A stretch of 63,634 bases of DNA, filler included, from Octopus bimaculoides (GCF_001194135.2; 4 parts of 4 records of this genome joined end to end with filler, not necessarily neighbours in it), one strand, 5' to 3'; positions 16,492 through 61,363 are shown, counted from the whole stretch's first letter. The notes: a model not told the origin generated them from the letters alone. Numbers and translations: made by a program.

Positions 16492-18325
16492 NNNNNNNNN
16501 NNNNNNNNNNNNNNNNNNNNNNNNNNNNNNNNNNNNNNNNNNNNNNNNNNNNNNNNNNNNNNNNNNNNNNNNNNNNNNNNNNNNNNNNNNNNNNNNNNNN
16601 NNNNNNNNNNNNNNNNNNNNNNNNNNNNNNNNNNNNNNNNNNNNNNNNNNNNNNNNNNNNNNNNNNNNNNNNNNNNNNNNNNNNNNNNNNNNNNNNNNNN
16701 NNNNNNNNNNNNNNNNNNNNNNNNNNNNNNNNNNNNNNNNTAGTCTCGTATTTCGAGCACAAACAACAACAAAAAACCTCTGCTCACAGTTTCACGTTCC
16801 CTGTTCGTCACTGTCCGACGAACAAGAACATGAAACTCTTAGTAGCCGTTTTTTGGTGATATTTTTGCAGATTTAATAATAAAGCATATTAATCTGACTC
16901 CAGTATTCGAGTTCTATTTTTCCTACCTTGCTTCACATTGATTTGCTTAATCTGGTAGATAGATAGATAGAAAGATATATATATATATATATATAGATAG
17001 ATAGATAGATATATACATACATACATACATACATACATACATACATACATACATACATGCTTGCATACTTACATGTATAGAGACAGGCAGACAGAAATAC
17101 ACACTTATAATTTTTGTGGGTGTAATAGAAGACACGTAATGGACACCTTTACTGGGCTGCAGGCAATTGAGTCTCGGAATGTTTTCCTCGGGAATGTGAC
17201 GTTTCACGGTGCCCCAATCAACTCAAAATGAATGAATAAATAAATAAATAAATAAATAAAAAAGAAATGGTATAACAGCAGACTGTACATATAACAATTG
17301 TCACGTTATTATATACGAAGGAGGACAATGGGAAGACAATGCGTTTCTGTCTGCTTGCAATGACATAGGTATCTATAGCTGTAAGAAAACGCATTGTTAT
17401 TTGCTTGCTCATTTAACGTATCCGAATGACGGCTATGGAATGATATGAATGAATCTGAATGTCTGTGTGTGTGCATGTGTGACTATTGTGTGAGACAGTA
17501 TTTGCGTGTGTGGTAAATAACAAGAATGACTTAGTGATTAAAAGGCTTGAAACCTAAATATTAGTAAAATGAAATCATATATATATTGCAAGTAATTACT
17601 ATATACAAAATGTGTCAACTGTACCGAATGCACGCAGTTGCACATATTCATTAGATCATTACACAATATGCATTTGCCAATCTCATATATTTTGTGTCGA
17701 TGCAGACTTCCACTAAGCTTAATATTTGCGAGGGGTCTCAACAAATTGAACACTCGTATTCTCGTTTAAGCATTACATAAATCTCAATTATTCGATTACT
17801 AATTTAGGTTGAGACATGACAGTATGTCGAGCAAAAATATTAATATATCTTAATTTCCCCAGAACCTAATATATGATTAATTGCAAGTACACGCGCACAT
17901 GGCCCCACACAAATCTACACACGCACTTATCAATATATATATGAATATACATATATATATACACACACATATCTATCTATCTACCTATCTNNNNNNNNNN
18001 NNNNNNNNNNNNNNNNNNNNNNNNNNNNNNNNNNNNNNNNNNNNNNNNNNNNNNNNNNNNNNNNNNNNNNNNNNNNNNNNNNNNNNNNNNNNNNNNNNNN
18101 NNNNNNNNNNNNNNNNNNNNNNNNNNNNNNNNNNNNNNNNNNNNNNNNNNNNNNNNNNNNNNNNNNNNNNNNNNNNNNNNNNNNNNNNNNNNNNNNNNNN
18201 NNNNNNNNNNNNNNNNNNNNNNNNNNNNNNNNNNNNNNNNNNNNNNNNNNNNNNNNNNNNNNNNNNNNNNNNNNNNNNNNNNNNNNNNNNNNNNNNNNNN
18301 NNNNNNNNNNNNNNNNNNNNNNNNN

Positions 18326-18381
<56 letters not shown>

Positions 18382-18442
18382 TATATATATATGTGTATAT
18401 ATGTATACATACATGTACGTATATCTGTATATATACATATAC

Positions 18443-18474
<32 letters not shown>

Positions 18475-18484
18475 TTATGCGTGT

Positions 18485-18815
18485 GACTCTGTTGTTAGAG
18501 TGGCAACCATACGATCATGAGGTTTGGAATTCGATTCCCGGATCAGGTTGCGTGTTGTGTTCTTGAGCAAGACACTTTATCTCACGTTGCTCCTATTCAC
18601 TCAACTGTAGAAATAAGCTTGCTACGTAACTCGTGTCAAGCTGTATCAGCTCATTTGCCTTTCCCTTGGATAACATCGGTGGCGTGGAGAGGGGTGTCTG
18701 GTATGCATTGGCGACTGCATACCAGGTTATGTGTTCGCCGGTGAGGTGACTTTCTGCCCAGATTTGTACCCAGGAGGGGAACCTTGTAGGTACACCCATG
18801 GTATTTCGTGACCGA
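18485..18815 (+). mobile_element. tRNA-derived SINE, family B-related
   Basis: GGAATTCGATTCCCGG B-box-like motif, GTTGTGTTCTTGAGCAAGACACTTTATCTCACGTTGCTCC core, and 3' GGTATTTCGTGACCGACGGAGT end like 7320-7340. Confidence 0.7.
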
Positions 18816-18843
18816 CGGAGTCGTGTTTATATATATAAACATC

Positions 18844-18891
18844 GTCTCCGATGAAGGGATATATAAAATATCCCGGAAACAGATGTAAGGC
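18844..18891 (+). ncRNA. Minimal (Penelope-type) hammerhead-like motif, core variant
   Basis: GUCU-CCGAUGA-A-GGGAUAU[loop]AUAUCCC-G-GAAA-C[AGAU]G-UA-AGGC: stems I, II and III can be drawn, but the core has U4>C. Confidence 0.5.
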
Positions 18892-20504
18892 CTTCTCTTT
18901 ATAAACGTTCTGAAATCTTTCACAGCCTTGGATTTTTATTTTATTCTGTTAACTGTGCATATATATATATATATGGAGAGAGAGAGAGAAAGCACATCCT
19001 AACATTTTTTTTATACCGTTATTGAATCTGGAGGTTTCAAATAGTTATCTATCTGAAATATCTGACCCTCTCATAACTTTATGTATAAAAATAATCATAT
19101 ACAGCATATCATAAAGTATTCCTATGATCTTTAATAATTTAAAGTTTATCAAAGCTTTTTATTATGTCCACAAATATAATATCCACTTACGGATTTCAAC
19201 TCATAATTTTTCTGGAATCGGACTCACCGATTATGTCATGCTGATTATCATTTTGGCGCATTACTTTGTAATTCATAGTAAATTTTGGCAATGCTTTGAG
19301 TAATTGTTGTTTTCATTATAAACCAAAATTTTTCTTGCTGGTTCTTCATGTCAGCATCAATACCTCTAAAGCTTTACCAATTCAGTATGTTCCCCATTAA
19401 ATGTGTAACCCCACTTTTTACAATAATTATTATCTGTTTATATATTTTATCTTCTATGTATTTCATGTTATATGTAACAACTTTCTTTCGGCTTGCATAG
19501 CCCATGAGCTACCTTTAATTCTTTAGCTGTTGAAATCTCCCTCCTGCTCTTCTTTTTCCCAAGTACTTTTGCCTTTTCATAAATACATCTTTATTATCCA
19601 TTTTACACTTTCTGTTGAATCTCATCTCTTTACATAAGTATTGTTTTGCGACGTGTTCCGATATATATGTATTTACGTTGTGCATCCATCTACCACCTGG
19701 CGTCCTTCACTTCTTCTTTATATTCTGTTTTCTGTATATTCTGCATTTACTTCTTTAGCGGAGTTTTAATCAATTCTTTGGCTGTTTATTCACTCTTCGT
19801 TCTGTGTTTACTTATTTCCAGGTATTTAAACCAGATTTATAATAACATTGGTAAACTCACTCGTAGCATAAAGTTTTGTTTTTCATTTTCGCTCACAAAT
19901 TATAATAGACGTACGGTTTCCTTTATGTTTATCATATCCTCGTTGAATCACTAGCAAGATTATGTTCTCTGTCTGAAGTAAAAGAAACTTCTGGCAAATG
20001 AAAATTTCTATGATTACTACACCTGCATATCGATCCTTAAATACTAAATTACGTCTTAATCGGAATACAATACTACTTACAAGCATGCATCGAGCTAGAT
20101 GTAGTGTGAGTCATTTGTGAAATATTACCAATCCATACCTCCCTTTCTGAACCAAGATATGCTACACTTCTCACCTAGAAAATAGGTATCGTTCACATTT
20201 CACGCATGAAATAAGGCTCATACACCGCTCTCATTAACAATAATGTTATAATCTATTCTCACAATATATCAAGCAGAAATGTTCGCTATAAACATATACA
20301 ATATGAAAGATGAGGCATTGTAACGGAACACAAAAGTGTTCGCTCAATTCTGCTGTAATTTAGGGGAGCAGAATAGTCTTTAAAAATAAAGTTTTATATA
20401 TTCTGTTTCATATGTCAATGTGTATGGTTGCATTTCGATGCATACACATTTCTGCCAGCTTATATATGCGTTATAGTGTAGAAAATATGAAGTATTAAGC
20501 TATA

Positions 20505-37559: not shown

Positions 37560-37594
<35 letters not shown>

Positions 37595-38427: not shown

Positions 38428-38619
38428 TTATTGCAGTTGTTGCTGATGTTGGTAGTAAGGGATGACGGTTTTAGATGGTGGTGATTGCCCACCGTGGAAG
38501 GGATTCTGACGGTTATAGATGTAGTTGTGGCTCTTGATAAAGCTGCGGCTGTTATTGTTATTATTGTTGCCGTCGTATATATGTATATGTATATGTGTGT
38601 GCGCGCGCGCGCGTGTTTG

Positions 38620-38820
38620 TGTGTCTGTGTTTGTCCCCCTAGCATTGCTTGACAACCGATGCTGGTGTGTTTATGGTCCCCGACACCTAGCGGTTCGGCA
38701 AAATAAACCGATAGACTAAGTACTAGGCTTACAAAGAATAAGTCTCGGGGTCGATTTGCTCGACTAAAGGCGGTGCTCCAGCATGGCCGCAGTCAAATGA
38801 CTGAAAACAAGTAAAAGAGA
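38620..38820 (+). mobile_element. SINE family A, 3' half
   Basis: GCTTGACAACCGATGCTGGTGTGTTT...GCGGTTCGGCAAAA...GGCGGTGCTCCAGCATGGCCGCAGTCAAATGACTGAAA. Confidence 0.9.
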
Positions 38821-39599
38821 ATCCATTATTGGACCTTCATCAGGGAAAAATAAATTTCTAAAAAGGCTCACATGTACTGCGTTTTTAGATATCTATCTAT
38901 CTATCTNNNNNNNNNNNNNNNNNNNNNNNNNNNNNNNNNNNNNNNNNNNNNNNNNNNNNNNNNNNNNNNNNNNNNNNNNNNNTATATATATATATATATA
39001 TATATGTATATGTATGTATATACACACACACACATATATATATGTATGCTCAGATGTACGCATGTATGCGTGTATATATTTGTAGTTATGTATTTATATG
39101 TATACTTGTATACGTATGAATATGTGTGTGTACTTATGCATTCACGTCAACAGTAGATAATTTCAAGTTTTTAGTATCAGATTGAGGACGAAGTTGAACC
39201 TGTTTCTACGTGGATCACTGCACACCACGGCCACAGCGCAATAAATTTCACTAACATTTTCTTAAATCGAGAAATAATTTCAGTCTTGCGTTCCTGCTGT
39301 TTTTCAAGAGTATACATGCAAACACCCCACTCACACACACAAACACACACACTCACACACACAAGCACATATACATGCATACATATACACGCGAAACACA
39401 CATATATTGTGTATTAAACGGAAGACATCAACAGACCACTATAACGCTGGAGACTGGCTGCTCTCCTGTAACAAAGGTTTTTGGTAATAATGGCCGCCCA
39501 AGTAGTTAAAGAGAATACCCATTATCCTTTTTAAATACTTGTACCAAATCATCATCACCACCAATATAATAATTATTATTTTTATTATTTTATTATTAC

Positions 39600-39854: not shown

Positions 39855-40971
39855 AGTGTGTTTCTTTTTATATTACGATGGAAATATTTACATAAAAACT
39901 TTGAAGTACAACGAAATGGTGACGTTGTAATGGCGTTGTCTCTTAGAGTGATATTGTTATTCATCCTTTGTTGTTAATGTCTGACGTCTGACGAATGAAT
40001 GGAATTGGTGCAGTGAGGTGAGATGCTACTTAAAGAGAAGAGAGTGATTACGTTTCTTGGAGGCACGGATTTAAAAAAATTTATTTATTTATTTAGTTAA
40101 CTATTTTCGTTTTTGGCTCGTGACTAGTTTTGGTCGCTGCCAAGACACTTAACTCAATTCTTTTGTGTCTTTACCCTAATTGAGAAATCATAGTGTTTGA
40201 CAACAACTTCCAAACTGTAAAACTAACCATTTTGTATCTACTTTGGATTGTTAATGCTCAAAAACGAACCAAAGTATTCAAGAACGAACAGAAGAAACAA
40301 GATATTTTTTTTTTCTTTTAAGAACTCGAAAAAATAAAGATTAAGACGAAATTCTAAACATACAAAATACATCCGTCTAACAGCTGTTTTCATCGTTTCG
40401 GCTTCAATAGATTTCACCCTTAAATACTTGTCTATCTCTTGATAGAGATCTTGTAATTTGCAAGAAACCATTTAGATAGACCTTTACCATCTGAGAAGCA
40501 TGATAATTATAGACGCCATCTTGTTAGGTATATTAACGATGGAGATATCTTGTTGTCAGTCAATAAACATAAAAAACCTTTTAATTGNNNNNNNNNNNNN
40601 NNNNNNNNNNNNNNNNNNNNNNNNNNNNNNNNNNNNNNNNNNNNNNNNNNNNNNNNNNNNNNNNNNNNNNNNNNNNNNNNNNNNNNNNNNNNNNNNNNNN
40701 NNNNNNNNNNNNNNNNNNNNNNNNNNNNNNNNNNNNNNNNNNNNNNNNNNNNNNNNNNNNNNNNNNNNNNNNNNNNNNNNNNNNNNNNNNNNNNNNNNNN
40801 NNNNNNNNNNNNNNNNNNNNNNNNNNNNNNNNNNNNNNNNNNNNNNNNNNNNNNNNNNNNNNNNNNNNNNNNNNNNNNNNNNNNNNNNNNNNNNNNNNNN
40901 NNNNNNNNNNNNNNNNNNNNNNNNNNNNNNNNNNNNNNNNNNNNNNNNNNNNTGTTCTTCTTCTTCTTCTT

Positions 40972-41263
<292 letters not shown>

Positions 41264-41286
41264 TGTATGTGTGTGCGCGTGCATGC

Positions 41287-41318
<32 letters not shown>

Positions 41319-41707
41319 AAATGTATACATGTAAACATGTTTCGGAATCAAACCCAAAACCACGTGTTTGTTACGCAACCACCTGTCTCAACCACACAGC
41401 CATATAAACATAATACGTCATAACTTAGAATTTTTGCAGATCTTCAGAGGTTCTAGTAGTGTTTACATGTGTAACGGAAATAATACTTTATTAACTTACG
41501 AAGATGCTAATGGCTACAAACCAAAGACCAAAGATAGCCGTCAAGTTCAATTCTACATAAAAAAAAAAAAATTATTAATTAAAAGATGCAGTGATATGTC
41601 ATATATTTTTTAGATATATTCTTTCTATTATATATTAAGTTCGTTGCTTACGGAGTTCTGACTGGGACTTTCTTGTAAAGAAACAAATGTCCGACAAACG
41701 TCCAACA

Positions 41708-41709
<2 letters not shown>

Positions 41710-41772
<63 letters not shown>

Positions 41773-41811
41773 GTTATTATCATCATCATCATCATCATCA
41801 TTATTATTATT
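41710..41811. repeat. (ATT)n/(ATC)n microsatellite abutting the homeobox-exon splice acceptor
   Basis: ...ATTATTATTATTACAG|TAATG; AG at 41814-41815. Confidence 0.95.
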
Positions 41812-41815
41812 ACAG

Positions 41816-42150
41816 TAATGGAAGAAGACAGCAGTAAAAACAAGGCATGCAAGAAGGGTTTGAACTTAAAATCTGAAAATAACATTCTGGAATTAAAACC
41901 TTCGTCTCTAAGCAAAGTGTTGGAATTTGGCCAGCATCGGTCTGAGACTCCGGAAGGTCTAAACTTGACGGACAATCTGAAGGCAGCCGAAAGGTGTGAG
42001 CTGAAGAGGAAGAAGAGGCGCAACCGGACAACATTTACCAGTTTTCAGCTGGATGAATTAGAAAGAATTTTTCAGAAGACTCATTATCCGGATGTCTATG
42101 CTCGGGAGCAGTTGGCCCTGCGTTGTGATCTTACTGAAGCGCGGGTTCAG
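41816..42150 (+). CDS. Alx: Internal exon of an Alx-family (Cart1/Alx4-like) paired-class homeobox gene; encodes 65 aa of linker plus homeodomain residues 1-46
   Basis: [49 protein letters not shown] closely resembles, as recalled, vertebrate ALX4 ([47 protein letters not shown]) and echinoderm Alx1 (...[15 protein letters not shown]), and differs from Arx (QRRYR, VFTREEL). Acceptor TACAG| (phase 1); donor CAG|GTGAGT at 42151 (phase 0) is the conserved PRD-class intron between residues 46 and 47. Confidence 0.92.
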
Positions 42151-42324
42151 GTGAGTGTGAAATATTGTCATTAAGGGCAAACTGATTGATTGGGCAGGTG
42201 GGTGTTTGGCCAGTGAAGGGTTGGGGTAGGGTATGAGTGAATGTGTGGATGTGTATGAGTTGGTGCGTGTGTGTATGAGAGTTCATGTGTGTGTGTGCGC
42301 GCGCGCTTGTGTGTTCTTTCATTT

Positions 42325-42450
42325 TCCGTTTACAAAATCCTCTCACAAGGCTTCAATCAGAGACTGCAGTAGAAGACACTTCTCCAAGGTGCCATTTAGT
42401 GGAACTGAACCCGAAGCCATGTGGTTAGGAAGCAAAGATCTTACCGTACA
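42325..42450 (-). mobile_element. SINE family A, 5' half
   Basis: TTTCCGTTTACAAAATCCTCTCACAAGGCTT...GAAGACACTT.TCCAAGGTGCC...CATGTGGTTAGGAAGCAAG. Confidence 0.75.
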
Positions 42451-42476
42451 GCCATGCCTCATATATATAAACGTTG

Positions 42477-42510
<34 letters not shown>

Positions 42511-42665
42511 TGTATGTATGTATGTCTTGGAACCACAAACGAGAGAAATGGTATTTGACACGATTAGTAGAGCTTATTTGTTTAAAAACTGAAGACTTTC
42601 GGCAATGTACTCGGAGTTCGTCGCCACGTGCGATTGTTTTGAGCGACAGTAATGCGTACGCACTC

Positions 42666-42698
<33 letters not shown>

Positions 42699-43483
42699 TG
42701 TGGGGGCGCACGTGTGTATGTGTGTATGTGTATTATACATGTATGTGTATAGTATAAACTCCATATTGCGTAATACAAAACCAGAGTGCGTGCAATATAT
42801 ACACTCTGATATATTTCCATTTCTTTACGCAGAAAGGATTTAAAATAAATTAGTTTTAATTAGATTCGCTGTTAAACTCTTAAAATAAATCCCATTCTAT
42901 TTAATTGTGTGTGTGTGTGTATATATGTGTGCATGTGTGTGTGTGTAGCATTTATATACATTGTGTATGCCAAAAATATATATATGAAAAAAAAAGAATC
43001 CAGCAAACAGAAGGGCTGTTTTTGGATTTGAAACCTGATACCTAGTGACGTTGTGACAGAAGGAAAGGTTCTATAAATGGTGTGAAACCGAAGAAATTCG
43101 AGATAATCAGTGTCGAATGCCTGCATGGTGATATATANNNNNNNNNNNNNNNNNNNNNNNNNNNNNNNNNNNNNNNNNNNNNNNNNNNNNNNNNNNNNNN
43201 NNNNNNNNNNNNNNNNNNNNNNNNNNNNNNNNNNNNNNNNNNNNNNNNNNNNNNNNNNNNNNNNNNNNNNNNNNNNNNNNNNNNNNNNNNNNNNNNNNNN
43301 NNNNNNNNNNNNATATACATATATATGTGTGTTTGTGTGCAAATATATCCACCGTCATCCTTATGTACAAAAATATCAAAAGTAGTATAAAAAACATTAT
43401 AGTATATGTGTAATTAGAAAAATTAAATTAAATATCCGATTATTTAATTAATTAGATGTTATATACATTCTAGAAGTTGGTGC

Positions 43484-43524
<41 letters not shown>

Positions 43525-43724
43525 GCACACACATACACATACTAATCTTCAGATATGTGTGTAAGCGTGCGTGTGTAAGGAGAGATAGATAGAAAGAGAG
43601 GGGGTTAGAGAGAAAAGACGATGCGTGTGTGTGTAACAGTGTGGAAAGGAAGAGAGAAATTGTCTGTGTTTGTGTTAGTGGCGGGGGAGGGGGCGTTAGA
43701 AAGAGAAAAGATAGGCGAAATGAC

Positions 43725-44059
43725 TGTTGCGGCTGCTGTTGTTGTTGTGTAGACGCTCAACGACATGGCGCGAATGACAGATCCATCTTGCTTGTTACAA
43801 TTTGTCTCGAAGTAGCTAATGACCGACCATACTTTACAATGTAGCATGCAGTGATGAATTGTGTGGGGCGTAGTATGACGTTATTCTGGGAATATTGCTG
43901 CCTGTTCATTGTCCAGATCCTGGCGGTATTTACAGTGATGATGGTAAAAAGAGAACTTAGAGCTTCACGGTTGCGGTTCCTTTGCGTTTATTGTTGGTTA
44001 AGAGCATCTCTACATCCCATCACATTGTTTGAAGCTAGTTAGGCTTATTGATGTAGCTA

Positions 44060-44151
<92 letters not shown>

Positions 44152-45260
44152 ATGAGTTAGAGAAATAATGTATTTAGAATAGTAGAGTAGTTCTTTGTGG
44201 GCGTTGTACACGTTTAGTAGCTTTTCATATCCTAACAGGGTCCCTGTGTATCACAGCTTGTTGCCGCAACAAACTGTGTCTTTCACATCTCCAGTTGGTC
44301 TTTCAGTTTTCCTATCTTTGTTTCGTAGTGTAAATGTTCTGAAGATGTGTTCTCTGTATAACTTGTGTATAACTTATGTGGTCTGTTTACCACCTGTTAA
44401 AATACGTAGAGTGTGTGTTTGTTGTTTATTGTGGCTTGCTGAGGAGAAATTTGGGGTCCTGATAGAAGAGGCATAGTCCATGATAGATCTAACATATTGT
44501 TTGTCCACCCATGTCGATGTGCTTTCTTCTGTTGGCCGAATGTGATGCCCTTCAGTGCTCTAAGTAAGTTTGTGCATCGTTTTGCCTTCCTTACTATGTC
44601 TTCTATGAATGAGGCGAATGTCATGCAGAAATTCTATATAACTCCTAGTGTTTTCGCTTTCTGTTTAGTTAAGTTAATATTGTGGTATGTTAAGTTATTA
44701 CTGTAATATGTTTATATTAAGTGGTATGTTTGCATTTGATATTGTCTGGTGTTGCTGGCAAAAAGAGAGACAGTGTATTTAATTGGTAAGTCTGTTGTTG
44801 TGGAACCAGGTTTCCAACTAATTGAAGTAGAATTGGGAGAGCTACGCAGCAGTGTGTCTAGAGAATATGAATGCCTTATCATTTCTGTATGTAATTGTCT
44901 GTATTTCTCAGAAATGAATAAAATCATTTATCCACCGTCTTAAGGGGTATTTTTTACCTGATTTTCTAAAGCCGTCTTCAGAACCATGTTCCTGCATTTC
45001 AAATTTCTTGTATTTCTAAGAAATACCAACTCATTCGACGCTTTAGTGTTTGTAACTGTCTATGTTTTATGGCGGTGTGGATTATTCAGATATAGGAAAA
45101 TGCAGGCGACAAGATGGATTCCTGTAGTAGTTCATTCGGCAGAATTGCAGTTTCTGGGGTCGACAGTCTTATACACTCTACATAATTAACGGAGAGACAC
45201 TTTGTTTTCAGCATTTTATGTTGTCTTTTGAAGTGGAATTGTGTATGTTTGAATGTGTGA
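43725..45260 (-). mobile_element. Decayed I/Jockey-group LINE (RT C-terminal half to (ACA)n tail), split by (GT)n at 44062-44148
   Basis: TLGVI*NFCMTFASFIEDIVRKAKRCTNLLRALKGITFGQQK (about 44655-44525) matches the LGV.FD..LTF..HI..I..KA......L..L.G..WG..KE motif; DGFRKS near 44970; reverse-complement 3' end TCTACACAACAACAACAGC near 43740. Confidence 0.7.
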
Positions 45261-45319
45261 ATAATAGCGAACAGAGTCGAAAACTTAATTGAAGTTTCCG
45301 TATATATATATATATATGC

Positions 45320-45357
<38 letters not shown>

Positions 45358-46318
45358 NNNNNNNNNNNNNNNNNNNNNNNNNNNNNNNNNNNNNNNNNNN
45401 NNNNNNNNNNNNNNNNNNNNNNNNNNNNNNNNNNNNNNNNNNNNNNNNNNNNNNNNNNNNNNNNNNNNNNNNNNNNNNNNNNNNNNNNNNNNNNNNNNNN
45501 NNNNNNNNNNNNNNNNNNNNNNNNNNNNNNNNNNNNNNNNNNNNNNNNNNNNNNNNNNNNNNNNNNNNNNNNNNNNNNNNNNNNNNNNNNNNNNNNNNNN
45601 NNNNNNNNNNNNNNNNNNNNNNNNNNNNNNNNNNNNNNNNNNNNNNNNNNNNNNNNNNNNNNNNNNNNNNNNNNNNNNNNNNNNNNNNNNNNNNNNNNNN
45701 NNNNNNNNNNNNNNNNNNNNNNNNNNNNNNNNNNNNNNNNNNNNNNNNNNNNNNNNNNNNNNNNNNNNNNNNNNNNNNNNNNNNNNNNNNNNNNNNNNNN
45801 NNNNNNNNNNNNNNNNNNNNNNNNNNNNNNNNNNNNNNNNNNNNNNNNNNNNNNNNNNNNNNNNNNNNNNNNNNNNNNNNNNNNNNNNNNNNNNNNNNNN
45901 NNNNNNNNNNNNNNNNNNNNNTATATATATATATATATATTTGAATAGTTGTGCAGGATTGTGTTTATATAACCTCGCAATTGCGGAAGTCTGTTTGAAA
46001 CCTCTATAGTTAAAGGTAGTTCAGAGGTCAGATGCGTTTTTTCCACATAAGTGCATATTGTAAGACTTATATATGAGAATGTAGACACATGTCAAGCAAT
46101 ATATAAATATATAGCTTGACATATGTATGGTGTATAACATTTCTTATACATGCATAGATAGATAAATACAAACATACATGCATACATACATAAATACGTA
46201 CATATATTACATACAAAAACAATAAATATCCAAACATATATACATACATACATCCATTCCTACACGAATATGTATATATGTACTAACATTTTTATATATA
46301 TGCTTAAATACATAAGCA

Positions 46319-46367
<49 letters not shown>

Positions 46368-47255
46368 NNNNNNNNNNNNNNNNNNNNNNNNNNNNNNNNN
46401 NNNNNNNNNNNNNNNNNNNNNNNNNNNNNNNNNNNNNNNNNNNNNNNNNNNNNNNNNNNNNNNNNNNNNNNNNNNNNNNNNNNNNNNNNNNNNNNNNNNN
46501 NNNNNNNNNNNNNNNNNNNNNNNNNNNNNNNNNNNNNNNNNNNNNNNNNNNNNNNNNNNNNNNNNNNNNNNNNNNNNNNNNNNNNNNNNNNNNNNNNNNN
46601 NNNNNNNNNNNNNNNNNNNNNNNNNNNNNNNNNNNNNNNNNNNNNNNNNNNNNNNNNNNNNNNNNNNNNNNNNNNNNNNNNNNNNNNNNNNNNNNNNNNN
46701 NNNNNNNNNNNNNNNNNNNNNNNNNNNNNNNNNNNNNNNNNNNNNNNNNNNNNNNNNNNNNNNNNNNNNNNNNNNNNNNNNNNNNNNNNNNNNNNNNNNN
46801 NNNNNNNNNNNNNNNNNNNNNNNNNNNNNNNNNNNNNNNNNNNNNNNNNNNNNNNNNNNNNNNNNNNNNNNNNNNNNNNNNNNNNNNNNNNNNNNNNNNN
46901 NNNNNNNNNNNNNNNNNNNNNNNNNNNNNNNNNNNNNNNNNNNNNNNNNNNNNNNNNNNNNNNNNNNNNNNNNNNNNNNNNNNNNNNNNNNNNNNNNNNN
47001 NNNNNNNNNNNNNNNNNNNNNNNNNNNNNNNNNNNNNNNNNNNNNNNNNNNNNNNNNNNNNNNNNNNNNNNNNNNNNNNNNNNNNNNNNNNNNNNNNNNN
47101 NNNNNNNNNNNNNNNNNNNNNNNNNNNNNNNNNNNNNNNNNNNNNNNNNNNNNNNNNNNNNNNNNNNNNNNNNNNNNNNNNNNNNNNNNNNNNNNNNNNN
47201 NNNNNNNNNNNNNNNNNNNNNNNNNNNNNNNNNNNNNNNNNNNNNNNNNNATGTG

Positions 47256-47299
<44 letters not shown>

Positions 47300-47394
47300 T
47301 ACATGTATATATATACATGTATATATACATATATACATGTATATATATATGTATATATACATATATACATATATATATGTATATATACACACAC

Positions 47395-47770
47395 ATATTC
47401 TTTTATTTGTTTCAGTCACTTGACTGTGGCCATGCTGGAGCACCGCCTTTTAGTCGAGCAAAACGACCCCAGGACTTATTCTTTGTAAGCCTAGTACTTA
47501 TTTTATCGGATCTTTTTTGCCGAACCGCTAGGTTATACGGTGGCGGAAACACACCTGCATCGCTTGTCAAGCGATGGTTGGGAAGGACAAACACAGACAC
47601 ACATATACGACGGGTTTCTTTCAGTTTCCGTCTACTAAATGCACAGACAAGGCTTTGGTCGGCCCGCGGCTATAGTAGAAGACACTTGCCCAAGGTGCCA
47701 CTGAACCCAGAACCATGTGGTTGGTAATACGGTTGGTAAGCAAGCTACTTACCATAGAGCTACTCCTGCA
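47395..47770 (-). mobile_element. SINE family A, near full length
   Basis: TTTCAGTCACTTGACTGTGGCCATGCTGGAGCACCGCC ... GGCTATAGTAGAAGACACTTGCCCAAGGTGCC ... CATGTGGTTGGTAAGCAAGCTACTTACC. Confidence 0.9.
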
Positions 47771-48408
47771 CCTATATACATTTATACATACACACTCACA
47801 CACATACATATGCATAAATATATATGCATATATATATGTGTGTGCGTATTCATATACATATATATATATGTATGGACGTGTGTATTTGCATGTGTATCTT
47901 TGTGTCTGTGTGTATATGCATAGTATATATATATCTGATATATATGTGTGCGTGTGTGTGTGTAGTGATTTGTTTGTTTGTTAGTAGTCCAGTGTATGTT
48001 CTTTGACATGATACAACGCAACAAACCATAATGGATGAATAAAGAACTGAGTTGGTTCTTCAGGTTTGTTTCTGTTTGAGGAAGCGGGAACGTCAGAGTC
48101 ACGTGTTATTTAACCTCGCCTGGCTGTGCAACATGGCGTGCTGAGTGTGGCTTTTAAATTATTGCTCTTTATTGTGGAAGATATTTCCCAAAGCAGACGA
48201 CCGAAAATTACTGATAAAATAGATAATATCTTCACACATACGTGTGTCTTCATGTCTTCATTAAAATTCTGACAACTACCATTTATCGTCTTACCTTTCC
48301 ATTGTTGTCTAATTTTCCTTCAATGTTTATTTCGTTGCTTTTTAATATTTCTGTAATTAAATGTAGAAAGATGTTACAAACATGTATTCATGTCAAAAAT
48401 GTAATATC

Positions 48409-48472
<64 letters not shown>

Positions 48473-48889
48473 TCATACACACACACACACACACACACAC
48501 ATAGTGCGCGCGCGCACTTTGTATTGAAACACGAGCGTGGTTTTTCGTTTCTATGAAGTCTCTTACAGTAGTTTAAAAACGATAATATTCCAAGGTTTAT
48601 AATCTTAGACCTTCACCGTCTCATCTTCAGAATGAAACGATATTGGTATGTATTGCTACCTCTCATCTTTCATGGTCTCATCCTCAAGATGCATTGATAT
48701 TGATGTGTTTTGCTCCCTCTTTAACATAGGCAAGGCCAAGAACACTGATGAAGCGTGGATTGATCTCTACATCCTCATTAGTCAGGTGTTTATATTTGTT
48801 TGCGTCTCCTGTATCTTAACCGCACATTTAAACAAGCACATTGCTGTATTATGAAAAATACTTCCATTATTAAACGTTTATAAGGCAAT

Positions 48890-49065
48890 AAGATGGCTGA
48901 ATCGTTACTGCCCCGGACAAAATGCTCAGCGGCATTTTGTCTGTTTTTATGTTCTGAGTTCAAAAACCACCGAGGTCGCCTTTGCCTTTCATCCTTTCGG
49001 TGTCAGCTACTCCACTCCGCGAATTTGCTAGTCTGGTGCCAAATTTTGAAACCATTATTAAACAT
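48890..49065 (+). mobile_element. SINE family C
   Basis: TGGCTGAATCGTTACTGCCCCGGACAAAATGCTCAGCGGCATTTTGTCTG...GTTCTGAGTTCAAA...GAGGTCGCCTTTGCCTTTCATCCTTTCGG. Confidence 0.75.
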
Positions 49066-49546
49066 TTATTTTGAGAACTCTGAAAAATTGCTTTCTCTTG
49101 TTATTGCTTTGTGAGGGAAGCGCAGACTTTCGTAACCGTATGGCGAACCTCACAGTGACTTATAAATTCCCCTGCGAACGTACAAATTTAAAATTTTCCT
49201 ACTCCAAAGGGATTTCTGTGTCATATCCTACAACAACCCATCCGCCATTCTATTATTTTAACTCCTTTGTGTTGTAATAAAACAGTGAAAACATACATTA
49301 TTAAAATAACATTTATGTTTACTAAGATGTTTATATTCGTACACAAGTTCAAAGTTATGTCTTTGTGTCCAGCCTGACTACAAGAGTTTTCATATATACA
49401 CCATGAACGTCTGATTATGCGTGTGTGTGTGTGTGTGTGTGTGTGTNNNNNNNNNNNNNNNNNNNNNNNNNNNNNNNNNNNNNNNNNNNNNNNNNNNNNN
49501 NNNNNNNNNNNNNNNNNNNNNNNNNNNNNNNNNNNNNNNNNNNNNN

Positions 49547-49589
<43 letters not shown>

Positions 49590-49934
49590 ATGCACACACA
49601 CACACACAGACACATTCATATATACACTCACAATAAGGTCCATTATTTTGATGCATAGACTGAGATTGAAGTGTAAAACAATTAAGGTTGGTGTGTATAT
49701 AAGTAAAGTTGGTGTATATACAACTAAAATGGTATATATATACAACCTAGCTTGACGTGTACAGAATAACGTTGCTGCGTGTAGAATTAAATGTTGAGGT
49801 GTGTTTGTGCGTATCGTATTCCCTACACAAATCCCCATGTGTGTAGAAAATTTTTTGCGAGTGTATAACCCAGTTTGATGTCTTCCACCAGCCCCATAAT
49901 GACGCGTGTATAATTAAAATAATGAAGCACTTAC

Positions 49935-50259
49935 CTTTGTTATTGTGTATATATGTAACTTTGGTGTTTCCCAAAATTTCATCAATTGAATGCTGGTTGT
50001 TGTTCGTGGTCACTCTCTGCGGCCCTTCGATTAAAGATCGATGAAGAAAGGTACTGGTGCAACTTAAACTGTCTCTGGCAGCCTGATTCCTTTCGTTGGC
50101 ACCTGTAACTATACCGTTTAAGGGCAGCAATGACATCCCTGTTGTGCCTTGCAGACTCACTTTCTCTTCCGCCGGATCCAAACATTGGAAGAAATAATTA
50201 TCGCAATAGACTTCTCTCTCTGCCTTGATATAGGCTGATGAAACGCCAGCCATCCTCAT
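49935..50259 (-). CDS. Putative first coding exon (108 codons + 1 nt) of a homeobox-type transcription factor with an eh1/octapeptide motif; candidate Alx exon 1
   Basis: ATG at 50259 (CCACCAATGAGGATGG), complex non-repetitive peptide MRMAGVSSAY...NNNQHSIDEILGNTKVTYIHNNK, and a consensus donor AAAG|GTAAGT at 49934 (phase 1). HSIDEILG resembles the Pax3/7 (HSIDGILG) and Rx (HSIEAILG) octapeptides. Confidence 0.75.
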
Positions 50260-50771
50260 TGGTGGTGGTCGAGGGTTTCAGGGGGTGGGGGGAGAGGAGG
50301 ACGGAGTGGAAATAGTAATAGGAGTAGTGATAGTGGTAGTAGTAGTAGTAGAAGTGGGGTAGGGCCGGGAGAACAGGAAGAGGGGTGAGGGGAAAAGTCG
50401 GGAGAAGGGGTGGTGTATTGTCTGGTTCCCTATTTGGGACCCACTTGTCTCGTTTTTTATCTTTTTTTTGAAGATTCTTTTAGAATTGCTGTCTCATATT
50501 GTTGTTGTTGTTGTTAGTGGTGGTGTTGGTGGCGGTGGTGGTATCACTGTTTATCAATGTTGTTGCTACTGATGATGATGATGATGGTGATGAAAACGAG
50601 GTAAATGAGGAGAATGGGAAAGATGAAGAGGATGCGGAGGGTGGGGGCGGGAATCTTTGTGGAAATAATGTTGTATAATGAAGAATCGGTGAAAATGGNN
50701 NNNNNNNNNNNNNNNNNNNNNNNNNNNNNNNNNNNNNNNNNNNNNNNNNNNNNNNNNNNNNNNNNNNNNNN

Positions 50772-52865: not shown

Positions 52866-52910
<45 letters not shown>

Positions 52911-52914
52911 ACAT

Positions 52915-53070
52915 TTTATTCTTTTATTTGTTTCAGTCATTTGACTGCGGCCATGCTGGAGCACCGCCTTTAGTCGAACAAATCTGACCCCAGGACTTAT
53001 TATTTGTAAGCCTGGTACTTATTCTATTGGTCTCTTTTGCTGAACCGCTAAGTTACGGGGACGTAAACAC
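52915..53070 (-). mobile_element. SINE family A, 3' half (runs into gap)
   Basis: TTTCAGTCATTTGACTGCGGCCATGCTGGAGCACCGCC...CCGCTAAGTTACGGGGACGTAAACAC. Confidence 0.9.
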
Positions 53071-53231: not shown

Positions 53232-53510
53232 GCGTGGCTGTATAGGCACAGGAGTGGCTCTGTGGTAAGTAGCATGCTTCCCAGCCACATGGTTCCAAGT
53301 TCAGTTCCACTGCGTGACACCTTGGGCAAGTGTCTTCTACTATAGCCTACGGCTGACCAAAGCCCTGTGATTTGATAGACGGATTTGGTGTGTGTGTATA
53401 TGTGTGTGTCTGTCTGTATTTGTCCCCCTCCATCCTCGCTTGACAATCGATGCTGGTGGCTTTATGCCCTCCCCCCGTAACTTAGCGGTTCGGCAAAATA
53501 GCCCGATACA
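53228..53510 (+). mobile_element. SINE family A, 3'-truncated
   Basis: GGAGTGGCTCTGTGGTAAGTAGCATGC...CCTTGGGCAAGTGTCTTCTACTATAGCC...CCCCGTAACTTAGCGGTTCGGCAAAA. Confidence 0.85.
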
Positions 53511-54073: not shown

Positions 54074-54214
54074 GTCTATTCAAATATATGTACACATATA
54101 TAATATGCATGTAATATATATATAATATATAACAGATATATAACATATAACATATAATATATAACATATGATATATAATAGATATATATGTAATAGATAT
54201 ATAATATATTTTAT

Positions 54215-54544
54215 TTTATTCTTTTATTTGTTTCAGTCATTTGACTGTGGCCATGCTGGAGCACCGTCATTAGTTGAGCAAATCGATCCCAGGGTTTATT
54301 TTTTGTAAGCCTAGTACTTATTCCATTGGCCTCTTTTGCCGAACCGCTAAGTTACGGGGGACATAAACACACCAGCATCGGTTGTCAAGCGATGTTAGCG
54401 GGACAAACACAGACGCACAAACATATGCGCGCGCACACACACACACACACACACATAGATACATATACATATACGACGGGCTTCTTTCAGTTTTCGTCTA
54501 CCAAATCCACTCACAGGGCTTTGGTTGCCCCGAGACTATAGTAG
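54215..54544 (-). mobile_element. SINE family A (runs into gap)
   Basis: TTTCAGTCATTTGACTGTGGCCATGCTGGAGCACC...ACGACGGGCTTCTTTCAGTTT...CCAAATCCACTCACAGGGCTTTGG. Confidence 0.9.
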
Positions 54545-58610: not shown

Positions 58611-59802
58611 GGTCATATTTTAGGTGTTTAATTGTATTAAGTTTTTATGAATTTTTAAAATTTTATAATTTTTTAATTTTTAAAATCTTTTAAATTTTGT
58701 AAAAATATATTAGGAAGTTATATATATATATATATATATTTTATAGTTTCAGCTTAGAGCTGCGGCCATGCTGATGCACCGCCGTGCAGGATCCGTTAGT
58801 AATAATAATAAAAAGAAAAATAGCCTGAGGATGCAGTGGCGGATTTTTGTATTAGGTATANNNNNNNNNNNNNNNNNNNNNNNNNNNNNNNNNNNNNNNN
58901 NNNNNNNNNNNNNNNNNNNNNNNNNNNNNNNNNNNNNNNNNNNNNNNNNNNNNNNNNNNNNNNNNNNNNNNNNNNNNNNNNNNNNNNNNNNNNNNNNNNN
59001 NNNNNNNNNNNNNNNNNNNNNNNNNNNNNNNNNNNNNNNNNNNNNNNNNNNNNNNNNNNNNNNNNNNNNNNNNNNNNNNNNNNNNNNNNNNNNNNNNNNN
59101 NNNNNNNNNNNNNNNNNNNNNNNNNNNNNNNNNNNNNNNNNNNNNNNNNNNNNNNNNNNNNNNNNNNNNNNNNNNNNNNNNNNNNNNNNNNNNNNNNNNN
59201 TATATATATATATACATGCATATACACAGCCACCCCTTCGCTAATATGTGTGTTTTTCTCTATGTGTGTATTTGTTTTGTATTGTGCTTGTCCCACCACC
59301 ATCACCGCTTGACCTCTGGTGTTGGTTTGTTTATGTCACTCTGAGTAATCGGTTCGGCAAAAAAATACAGCCCAATGACTGTAACAAGGGGAAAAAAAAA
59401 CAATATGAAAAATAAATGATGCCATCACGCACGTCAAACCAATCCAAACCACCACTCTTTCAATCCTAACCGATTGAATTAATTAACGAAGCAATTATCT
59501 AATCGGTTAATATAGATTTAATGCAATAATTTAATGTTAATCTAATAATTTTAATAGTAATGACGTAATCTTAGCTGGAGCAACATCAAACATTCCGCTT
59601 ATTTGAGCGTTCATCAGGGATTTAAATTAACCTAGTACTTAATGAGGTTAATATTTTACCGACCCCCAGATATAAACGAAGGCAAAAATCTACCACAGCG
59701 CGATTTGAACTTTGCTCAGATCGTTACCAAAATATCTCCAAAATGTCTTTTGTCCGACACTTTGGTACTTGACAAGATTAATATTTTATCGACCTGCTCT
59801 GA

Positions 59803-60125
59803 AACGGCGAGCTGGCAGAATGGTTAACACGCCGGGCGAAATGCCGCTGAGCATTTCGCCCGTCTTTACGTTCCGAGTTCAAATTCCGTGGAGGTTGATT
59901 TTGCCTTTCTTCCTTTTAGGAAGTACCAGTTGAGTACTGGGGTCAATATAATCGACTTATCCCCATTTATTCATCCTCCTTAGGCGGTGAGCTGGCAGAA
60001 TCCTTAACACGCCGGGCAAAATGCTAAGCGGCGTTTCGTCCGTCTTTACGTTCTGAGTTCACATTCCGCCAAGATCAATTTTATCTTTCCTTCTTTCAGG
60101 GGTCGATAAAATAAGTACCAATGAG
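59803..60125 (+). mobile_element. Two tandem SINE family C copies
   Basis: GGCGAGCTGGCAGAATGGTTAACACGCCGGGCGAAATGC...GTTCCGAGTTCAAATTCC at 59805, and GGCGGTGAGCTGGCAGAATCC... at 59983. Confidence 0.85.
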
Positions 60126-60439
60126 TCACTCCATTCAACAGCTTTCTCTCTTGGTTCTTCGTTCCAGGTGTTCGGATCAGGCNNNNNNNNNNACTGGGGT
60201 CAATATAATCGACTTATCCCCATTTATTCATCCTCCTTAGGCGGTGAGCTGGCAGAATCCTTAACACGCCGGGCAAAATGCTAAGCGGCGTTTCGTCCGT
60301 CTTTACGTTCTGAGTTCACATTCCGCCAAGATCAATTTTATCTTTCCTTCTTTCAGGGGTCGATAAAATAAGTACCAATGAGTCACTCCATTCAACAGCT
60401 TTCTCTCTTGGTTCTTCGTTCCAGGTGTTCGGATCAGGC
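59936..60439. other. Assembly duplication: 247 bp repeated across a 10-N gap
   Basis: 59936-60182 appears identical to 60193-60439, with N at 60183-60192; the same pattern (35 bp) occurs across 8397-8406. Confidence 0.85.
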
Positions 60440-60874
60440 CTTTAGCCGGAGAACAACTTCTTTCCTCTCTGCACCACCCACCCGTGCTGGAGGTCCTGAA
60501 AAAGATCATAGATTTGTGACCCTCACGTTACTAAACAATGGAACAATAACATTCTCGTTGCTCGTCAAATACTTCCACTCAGCCCCAATCTTTGAAATAT
60601 CATTCATCAACTGACTCCACCCCCAGTAACCTCGCAGATCATTTATGTTGAAACAACTGAGATTTTTAATTTTATTTTCTATAATTAACAAGTTCAAAGG
60701 AAAGCTAAATGTGGGGGGTAATAATGCATTTACGAAAATGTAGTTAATATATAATTAAAAAGGGAATTAATACAATCAAAGACTGTTTATGTATGCAATT
60801 ATATTTATAATCTATCAGAAAATCAGCGGGGGAATTTATTGGCGAAAAGAAACGCAGATGTGGATGGTATTTCA

Positions 60875-60985
60875 AACTTGTGTCTCCATCTAACTTTAGT
60901 CTTCTGTTTACATCTATCTTCAGTCTTCTCTCTGCATCAAACTTTAGTCGTGTATCTTCATCTAACTCTAGTCTTGTGTTTACAT
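60875..60985 (-). repeat. Degenerate 24-bp tandem repeat (about 4.5 units) with an open minus-strand frame
   Basis: Translates as VNTRLELD-EDTRLKFD-AERRLKID-VNRRLKLD-GDTSLK within ORF 60744..61019(-). Confidence 0.7.
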
Positions 60986-61307
60986 ATAGCTTTACTAGAT
61001 TATAATAGAAAATAAACAACTTACGCTAAGTGCCGCCAGGTGAGACCGAACCCAGTTACGTACCAAGTGGAGAACCTCTACTCACCTAGTCATTAAACTT
61101 GCTAGAAATAGCAATCAAATTTCCTTTCCTCAGTAAGAGTTATTGTGTGTCCTTTTCCCCGTCTGACTAACGCCTTCGCTCGGTTGTCCTGCTCTCCCTG
61201 GGGTTAGGTTAACCTATTGCGATTTCAGGCACAGCAATAGACTGGACTGAAACAGTCTGTTACCATGACAATGTCACAGTACTGCTCTTAATTAAACACC
61301 TGCTTTA

Positions 61308-61363
<56 letters not shown>

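Follow-up and report, generated by a model that had tools for sequence, protein, structure and literature searches.

An Alx homeobox exon facing its own first exon on an Octopus bimaculoides scaffold, very probably through a contig placed backwards

Alx (aristaless-like) genes are paired-class homeobox genes of the Q50 paired-like type, represented by ALX1, ALX3 and ALX4 in vertebrates and by 'ALX homeobox protein 1-like / aristaless-like 4' in lophotrochozoans. They have an intron in the homeobox after homeodomain residue 46, and lophotrochozoan ALX-like proteins (mollusc, brachiopod and annelid) have a 13-residue motif in common. Those of Haliotis, Lingula and Lineus combine an N-terminal YIKxE motif with the octapeptide NQHSIDEILG. 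In cephalopods, the ALX4 model of the cuttlefish Acanthosepion/Sepia pharaonis (CAE1325104.1) and two cuttlefish-type orthologues (P0001 and P0122) have a phase-1 junction at the residues K-V-M and the same exon-2 boundaries. All of these features recur in the window, by which we mean the whole 63,634-nucleotide stretch of Octopus bimaculoides DNA that was analysed (parts of four records joined end to end with filler). However, the 23.8-kb piece of the window that carries the gene differs from known Alx genes in holding exons 1 and 2 only, with helix 3 (residue 50) and the C-terminus missing, and the two exons face each other on the scaffold. Unlike the window, decapodiform relatives also carry insertions of poly-G, poly-N and poly-S, and a 34-aa cassette exon is used alternatively there. 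A literature search for octopod Alx or for this locus found no paper.

Both exons (Table 1) proved to be phase-matched, on opposite strands and bounded by clean splice sites, as the first-pass annotation had read them. Exon 2 follows the acceptor ...ttattattacag| and opens as cag|TA in phase 1, so that TA precedes the first full codon; its frame 3 is open for 111 aa (MEEDSS...) and runs to a phase-0 donor, ...TEARVQ|gtgagt. The Pfam Homeodomain profile (PF00046) matches it with 2.7e-14 over profile positions 1-45 of 57, a partial match because the exon stops at homeodomain residue 46, and this homeodomain is 92% identical to that of Haliotis over 50 aa. The 3' end of exon 1, AACAAAG|gtaagt, is of phase 1 by translation, leaving a single G, and the product contains the N-terminal motif as YIKAE and the octapeptide as NQHSIDEILGN. 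A second ATG lies at 50253 in the context AGGATGG; in alignments it falls on Met1 of the relatives and is, judged from this, a likelier start codon than the first ATG. When the P0001 protein was compared with the piece by tblastn, exon 2 was recovered with an E value of 7e-38 and exon 1 with 5e-15, so the pair is not a chance resemblance. Two cuttlefish ORFs of exon 1, P0123 and P0125, stop at this donor as well (...HK|GK). An exon-1-only query in a word-index search with two-sequence alignment gave no match, and the sole exon-1 match of an exhaustive representative search, a bacterial repeat protein (P0121), was taken as chance.

Table 1. Coordinates of the two Alx exons, their contigs and the sequence between them, counted from the first letter of the window.
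Feature	Position	Strand	Remarks
Alx coding exon 1	50259-49935	-	108 aa open from first ATG; GTAAGT donor
Alx coding exon 2	41816-42150	+	335 nt; linker and homeodomain residues 1-46
Contig with exon 1	49547-50698		1152 bp
Contig with exon 2	40953-43137		2185 bp; N-gaps 40588-40952 and 43138-43312 at its ends
Inter-exon sequence	42151-49934		presumed intron 1 and part of the putatively misoriented contig

Joining the exons completes a valine codon (G+TA = GTA) and gives 660 nt that are open for 220 aa, an earlier claim that translation confirmed. The predicted joined peptide reads HNNK-V-MEEDSS across the splice AAAG|TAATGG, and the full predicted transcript junction is ...AACAAAG|TAATGGAAGAA..., or in a longer form ...ATACACAATAACAAAG|TAATGGAAGAAGACAG... 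P0001, a cuttlefish-type transcript with a 355-aa ORF on an intronless Logan contig of 1487 nt, covers 99% of this peptide (E 5.7e-52; BLASTP 2e-62). Identity of the window to cuttlefish ALX4/P0001 is 53% overall, with near-identity within the homeodomain. The alignment passes unbroken through the junction (HNNKVMEEDSS in the window, HYHKVMEDTNS in P0001) with the same K-V-M codon, and the P0001 cDNA reads ...AAAG|TAATGGAAGA at this point, or at greater length CATAAAG|TAATGGAAGAT. A gapless genomic contig from a second related species (L001), with 83.6% nucleotide identity to the P0001 cDNA over exon 2, has ctag|TAATGG and ACAG|gtaaga exactly at the predicted exon-2 borders. The exon-1 and exon-2 segments are also linked in the isoform P0122, there by way of the 34-aa cassette. 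Since P0001 spans 99% of the joined peptide with the same K-V-M junction, transcript linkage in the relative indicates that exons 1 and 2 are parts of a single Alx gene.

By its protein matches, this gene is to be classed as an ordinary Alx/aristaless-like paired-class orthologue, closer to Alx than to aristaless, PHOX2B or Paired. The best PDB match of exon 2 is the human ALX4 homeodomain (85 bits, 2.2e-23), while Drosophila aristaless, Paired and PHOX2B chains score 68, 67 and 65 bits, respectively. Named matches covering 60-71% of the query are mostly ALX1/ALX4-like proteins from Lingula, Mytilus, Crassostrea, Owenia and Tubulanus, except for one aristaless and one Rx1-like protein, and several of the named matches also carry the octapeptide. 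The ORF cluster of exon 2 contains 'ALX4 [Acanthosepion pharaonis]'; the public contig index has no entry for either of the window's two ORFs, and exact-match DNA scans for strings of exon 1 and exon 2 returned 0 matches among metagenome contigs. In P0001 the homeodomain is complete (Pfam 1e-24) and helix 3 reads VWFQNRRAKWRKRE, which gives Q50; the corresponding exon 3 is absent from the piece, where neither exon 3 (WFQNRRAK) nor the 34-aa cuttlefish cassette exon was found on either strand. The OAR motif is present in the Haliotis and Lingula ALX-like proteins, and none was detected in the cuttlefish-type orthologues P0001 and P0122 at E <= 0.01; cephalopod Alx may thus do without this hallmark. 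An OAR-like motif was likewise not found on either strand of the piece, where C-terminal exons are not expected.

Very probably, the opposed exons belong to one minus-strand Alx gene in which the scaffolder has reversed the contig with exon 2, or a slightly larger gap-bounded block around it. The first-pass annotation had already proposed one minus-strand gene with a flipped block; its single-gene part is borne out by the related cephalopod's transcript, which joins both exons at the identical codon, and we infer that the reversal arose in the assembly and not through a real inversion. The piece consists of 13 contigs with a median of 1349 bp. Neither exon reaches an N-gap (exon 2 lies 863 bp and 987 bp from the ends of its contig, exon 1 388 bp and 439 bp), no sequenced base crosses either putative breakpoint, and both candidate junctions are runs of N. 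Along the minus strand the exons already follow each other in the correct order; exon 2 is wrong in its orientation alone. An artefact is suggested by this combination of right order and wrong orientation, by the position of exon 2 on a small contig gapped at both ends, and by the intactness of both exons, with open frames, canonical splice sites and a conserved homeodomain, which is not expected from an old gene-breaking inversion. It is also suggested by a second flaw in the same piece: 59936-60182 and 60193-60439 are 100% identical over 247 bp across a 10-N gap, which proves them to be overlapping contig ends left unmerged, an assembly artefact. In the animal's genome, both exons would most probably lie on the same strand and be spliced as predicted above, with exon 3 (VWFQNRRAK...) beyond the piece or inside a gap. 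Reversing the exon-2 contig would be the smallest change that restores a collinear minus-strand gene; flipped in place, exon 2 would come to about 42274-41940 (-) and leave an intron 1 of about 7.7 kb, in which 1722 positions are estimated N.

The extent of the reversed unit had first been drawn wider, as a block from 37560 with strand-symmetric (AT)n at both ends. That a block around exon 2 can be flipped stands, but 37560 is merely the edge of the piece, and since further gaps (38907-38982 and 40588-40952) lie to the left of exon 2, the exon-2 contig itself is the smallest flippable unit. The symmetry of the ends did not hold, as the left end of this contig is (TTC)n(TTA)n, for which no partner was found in any arrangement. 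The argument from symmetric (AT)n would in any case add little, because scaffolders orient by read pairs and not by the sequence of contig ends, and a smaller flippable unit exists. By contrast, the (GT)n on either side of the gap 49447-49546 (100 N) was confirmed; its polarity does not change across the gap, in support of the present orientation of the exon-1 contig relative to contig 47251-49446. Microsatellite continuity is informative at this gap only, the AT-type repeats elsewhere being strand-symmetric. Four gaps lie between the exons (43138-43312, 45358-45921, 46368-47250 and 49447-49546; 1722 N in total). The rest of this stretch includes SINE-like repeats, microsatellites and one decayed fragment of LINE type, and no further Alx exon was found there on either strand. 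The apparent intron 1 is much shorter than in a decapodiform relative, where it measures at least about 43 kb if the exons are single-copy there, so the exon-2 contig may be misplaced besides being misoriented. Other orientation markers were silent: in a search for conserved non-coding elements between the window and L001 only exon 2 aligned, without an orientation signal, and no such signal came from strand-composition skew per contig, a powerless test because the relative's introns used as calibration show no consistent skew. SINE-like copies are complete or 5'-truncated inside contigs, and no SINE or LINE copy split across gaps ties the exon-2 contig to a neighbour.

The assembly as it stands does show opposite strands, and a real inversion of a few kb carrying exon 2, either polymorphic and possibly heterozygous in the sequenced individual or present in the species, would explain this directly; the inverted allele would then be broken or cut down to an octapeptide-only product. 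AT-type repeat occurs where the exon-2 contig ends on the right (..GATATATA) and again where its right-hand neighbour begins (ATATACATATAT..). It agrees with the present join across 43138-43312, yet it fits this orientation only weakly, and AT repeats flank most gaps in the piece. Against an inversion, both breakpoints would have to fall within unsequenced gaps and the window holds no junction sequence. Exon 2 has suffered no damage, its conservation is high and its splice sites are good, which makes a fixed or old inversion unlikely, and Alx was kept across the lophotrochozoan lineages sampled in our search. An inversion of kb scale that isolates exactly one exon is a priori far rarer than a 2-kb contig turned the wrong way in a scaffold built from short reads, and this scaffold is known to contain the unmerged overlap. 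We therefore regard a real inversion as unlikely. The broader proposition that the orientation is real and Alx is either inactivated or in need of joining opposite-strand transcripts by trans-splicing is, in our estimate, distinctly improbable. Trans-splicing of pre-mRNAs from opposite strands is known from Drosophila mod(mdg4), and expression of an Alx gene in its present arrangement by trans-splicing of two such pre-mRNAs would be compatible with the matching phase and intact splice sites on opposite strands, the only points in its favour. However, no evidence of such Alx trans-splicing turned up in any animal, and on neither of the decapodiform relative's two contigs does the partner exon occur, in whatever orientation, within 10 kb; as exons 1 and 2 are on different contigs there, that case lends no support. 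An assembly error is the simpler account of everything, and we consider active trans-splicing here vanishingly improbable.

Two further readings take the exons as belonging to different genes or copies. There might be a pair of Alx paralogues in convergent orientation, or exon 2 might have been duplicated in inverted form, with the partner exons (a minus-strand exon 2 and a plus-strand exon 1) in the gaps or outside the piece, and the N-gaps of 365-883 nominally could hide a 0.33-kb exon. We hold this to be very unlikely, as there is no second copy of exon 1 or 2 on either strand and no second Alx paralogue among the cephalopod matches; moreover, the gaps are flanked by microsatellites, hence probably filled by repeats, and the relative's introns exceed 10 kb. 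The other reading, which goes back to the first-pass annotation, is that of two PRD-class genes in which the minus-strand exon is Rx/Arx/Hbn-like and the plus-strand exon belongs to a nested or adjacent antisense Alx. The exons do lie on opposite strands, and the octapeptide HSIDEILGNTK presumably resembles that of Rx-type proteins, which counts for such a pair. On the other hand, a single ORF of P0001 contains the homologues of both exons, joined as predicted here, and its isoform links them too, through the cassette. The OAR-bearing ALX-like proteins of Haliotis and Lingula share the N-terminal motif and an octapeptide (NQHSIDDILGN and NTHSIDEILGN, respectively). The octapeptide exon is exon 1 of Alx by homology to P0001, and not of Rx, Arx or Hbn; a second PRD-class gene is thus refuted, and we see scarcely any chance for it.

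A contig placed backwards, our preferred reading, matters mainly for quality control, as the gene itself is a biologically ordinary Alx orthologue and an inversion would be noteworthy only if real. Gene predictors are unable to link exons across strands, so Alx would be missing, truncated or split in this assembly, and a gene-family census could wrongly score it as lost or broken in Octopus bimaculoides. From the exon positions and the splice junction, which was verified, the gene model can be repaired as soon as the orientation has been checked. Of minor evo-devo interest are the conservation of the octapeptide across lophotrochozoan Alx and the apparent absence of OAR in the cuttlefish-type orthologue. 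Compared with known misorientation errors, the present putative one is deduced from the assembly sequence. It looks like the contig misorientations of short-read mate-pair assemblies, being a small contig with N-gaps on both sides and microsatellites at its ends, which sits in the right position and in the wrong orientation.

The piece holds a single Alx gene whose head-to-head exons are most probably the product of a scaffolding misorientation. Exon 1, the octapeptide-bearing first coding exon, is a 108-codon open stretch that starts with an ATG and ends ...CACAATAACAAAG/gtaagt. Exon 2, the homeobox exon, is a 111-codon open stretch with a long (ATT)n/(ATC)n tract and ...ttacag/ before it and /gtgagt after it. 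The Pfam Homeodomain match on exon 2 (2.7e-14, profile positions 1-45) is cut by the exon end. The G left over at the end of exon 1 and the TA at the start of exon 2 form a Val codon, and the joined exons (660 nt) are open for 220 aa. They are joined purely by splicing, and the frame never spans unread letters; exon 1 lies 388 and 439 bp and exon 2 863 and 987 bp from its contig ends, without contact to a gap. On re-examination, the coordinates, splice motifs and phases in the first-pass annotation matched exactly for both exons. The Met1 of related proteins aligns with the second ATG of the window (50253, context AGGATGG), which is probably the true Alx start codon. Directly upstream of the exon-1 ATG, in the presumed 5' UTR or promoter, lies a tract strongly enriched in C and T (CCTCCTCTCCCCCCACCCCC, (ACT)n); the cuttlefish-type transcript has nothing similar in its 406-nt 5' UTR.

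A search of a large protein collection with the joined peptide returned a clear best match, a 355-aa cuttlefish-type Alx orthologue (P0001; 99% query coverage, 53% identity, E 5.7e-52). The pairwise alignment (E 2e-62) is unbroken through the junction, which reads ...NCNQHSIDDILGNTKVTHTHYHK-V-MEDTNSKLKMCK... on the side of the relative. The Logan contig that encodes P0001 as its sole ORF (L002, 1487 nt; run SRR23936168) is intronless and thus a transcript, with CATAAAG/TAATGGAAGAT at the junction. In a second related species, a gap-free genomic contig (L001, ENA ERZ21867824 ctg111151l; 83.6% identity to the L002 cDNA over exon 2) has the exon-2 acceptor (...tttctag/TAATGGAAGAT) and donor (AGAGTACAG/gtaaga) at the positions predicted in the window. 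Two exon-1 ORFs of relatives (P0123 and P0125) end two codons beyond ...HYHK, as GK and then a stop, which corresponds to the same GTAAG donor as in exon 1 of the window. Judged by these comparisons, both exons belong to one gene. In the cluster with exon-2 ORFs, the entry "ALX4 [Acanthosepion pharaonis]" shows that cuttlefish are among the relatives, and the group is taken to be decapodiform; the window stands well apart from them, at 62% identity for exon 2 and 41-44% for exon 1, a distance that would suit an octopod. The last 2.4 kb of L001 (~18000-20423) show extreme strand skew (TA skew +0.55 to +0.65, GC skew -0.41 to -0.46) and are probably a long pyrimidine-rich simple repeat.

Among solved structures, the human ALX4 homeodomain was the best match (85 bits, 2.2e-23); Drosophila aristaless (68 bits), Paired (67) and PHOX2B (65) scored lower. 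Named matches at 60-71% query coverage were mostly ALX1-like or aristaless-like-4 proteins from Lingula, Mytilus, Crassostrea, Owenia and Tubulanus; one Saccoglossus match carries the name "aristaless" and one Haliotis match "Rx1-like". The octapeptide of exon 1 is Rx-like, but an N-terminal M-T-T-A..YIK.E motif and octapeptide are shared by Alx-like proteins of Haliotis, Lingula and Lineus, which rules out an Rx-type identity and makes this Alx exon 1. In P0001 its homologue is joined to that of the homeobox exon, which refutes the proposal of a second PRD-class gene.

The usable piece (37560-61363; 23,804 positions, G+C 36%) contains 12 internal N-runs, which leave 13 contigs with lengths of 446-4091 bp (median 1349 bp), and four gaps totalling 1722 N separate the two exons. 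One has (GT)n of the same polarity on both flanks, reasonable evidence for continuity there and in agreement with the first-pass annotation; the flanks of the other three carry, on one side or both, AT-type repeats, which are strand-symmetric and hence uninformative for orientation. A flippable block starting at 37560 with (AT)n at each end, also suggested earlier, needs correction: this position is just the edge of the piece, and the exon-2 contig begins not with (AT)n but with (TTC)n(TTA)n, which forms the tail of a SINE-like element. Given the two gaps to the left of exon 2, this 2185-bp contig is the smallest turnable unit.

Coordinates of exons, contigs, gaps and repeats in the piece
Feature	Position	Strand	Remark
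Exon 1	50259-49935	-	
Exon 2	41816-42150	+	
C/T-rich tract	50260-50420	-	
Exon-2 contig	40953-43137		
Gap left of exon 2	38907-38982		
Gap left of exon 2	40588-40952		
Gap right of exon-2 contig	43138-43312		AT-type flanks
Gap between exons	49447-49546		(GT)n flanks
SINE-like copy	38575-38818	-	
SINE-like copy	41082-41217	-	
SINE-like copy	42314-42507	+	
SINE-like copy	47385-47776	+	
SINE-like copy	53241-53508	-	
SINE-like copy	52905-53070	+	cut by gap
SINE-like copy	54213-54544	+	cut by gap
Non-LTR retrotransposon-like fragment	~44350-44930	-	decayed; by eye only: ...RKAKRCTNLLRALKGITFGQQKK..., ...YVRSIMDYASSI...
Identical 247-bp end	59936-60182		closes contig 59201-60182
10 N	60183-60192		
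Identical 247-bp end	60193-60439		opens contig 60193-61363
Diverged direct repeats	59805-59920, 59985-60100, 60242-60357		~78% identity, spacing ~180 bp

Direct evidence of a scaffolding and gap-closing error in the piece comes from two 100% identical 247-bp contig ends, which are overlapping ends never merged by the assembler and form a false tandem duplication. The diverged direct repeats nearby, which resemble a true short tandem or satellite-like repeat, are probably the cause of the failed merging. The seven SINE-like copies share 70-90% identity and frequently have microsatellite tails; several contig ends lie inside or adjoin copies, the exon-2 contig holds two of the seven, and ARAGORN found no tRNA-like head in them. 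The retrotransposon-like fragment resembles the region downstream of a reverse-transcriptase domain and carries frameshifts and stops.

Read along the minus strand, the exons already stand in the right order (exon 1 at ~50.2 kb, exon 2 at ~42 kb) and the sole fault is how exon 2 is oriented, the signature of a contig rightly placed but turned; the 2.2-kb contig would thus have been turned around during scaffolding. Small-contig misorientation is a common error in read-pair scaffolding; natural few-kb inversions that set apart just one exon of a conserved developmental gene are rare. A real, recent inversion carrying exon 2 is improbable; its breakpoints would fall in the gaps at each contig end, where there is no sequenced base. 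The AT-type repeats on both sides of 43138-43312 fit the present join, but weakly, as such repeats lie beside most gaps here. Both exons are intact with canonical splice sites, and the homeodomain shares 92% identity with its Haliotis counterpart over 50 aa, which speaks against an inversion that is old or fixed and breaks the gene; any more exotic reading has negligible probability. No orientation signal came from conserved non-coding sequence, from strand-composition skew or from repeats split across gaps, the public contig index had no record of the window ORFs, and exact DNA scans of metagenome contigs with exon-1 and exon-2 strings gave no matches.

Neither a WFQNRRAK-type exon 3, nor an OAR motif, nor a homologue of the cuttlefish cassette exon was found on either strand of the whole piece. 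In a relative, exons 1 and 2 are on separate long-read contigs of one sample, 21.0 kb before the contig end and 21.9 kb after the contig start, respectively; provided that neither exon has a second copy there, intron 1 would span at least ~43 kb. With such a long intron, neighbouring exons are expected to be absent from a 24-kb piece, and their absence does not inform gene direction. The apparent intron 1 in the window (~7.7 kb) is short in comparison, a weak point against an assembly artefact, and the exon-2 contig may be misplaced in addition to turned.

The main value of misorientation as the preferred reading is a warning that the assembly will yield a broken Alx gene model. P0127 (ALX4 [Acanthosepion pharaonis], CAE1325104.1) continues past ...TEARVQ with ~300 aa of low-complexity F/S/L-rich sequence, not VWFQNRRAK, and seems to run on into the intron, so that Alx would be mis-modelled in another cephalopod annotation also. 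The Alx gene in the piece is an ordinary orthologue. Cuttlefish-type Alx has an alternative first exon (P0124, P0127) and, in isoform P0122, an alternative 34-aa cassette exon between the homologues of exons 1 and 2 that keeps phase 1. This cuttlefish-type orthologue (P0001, P0122) is without a Pfam OAR motif, whereas the ALX-like proteins of Haliotis and Lingula, the two checked among those of Haliotis, Lingula and Lineus, have one.
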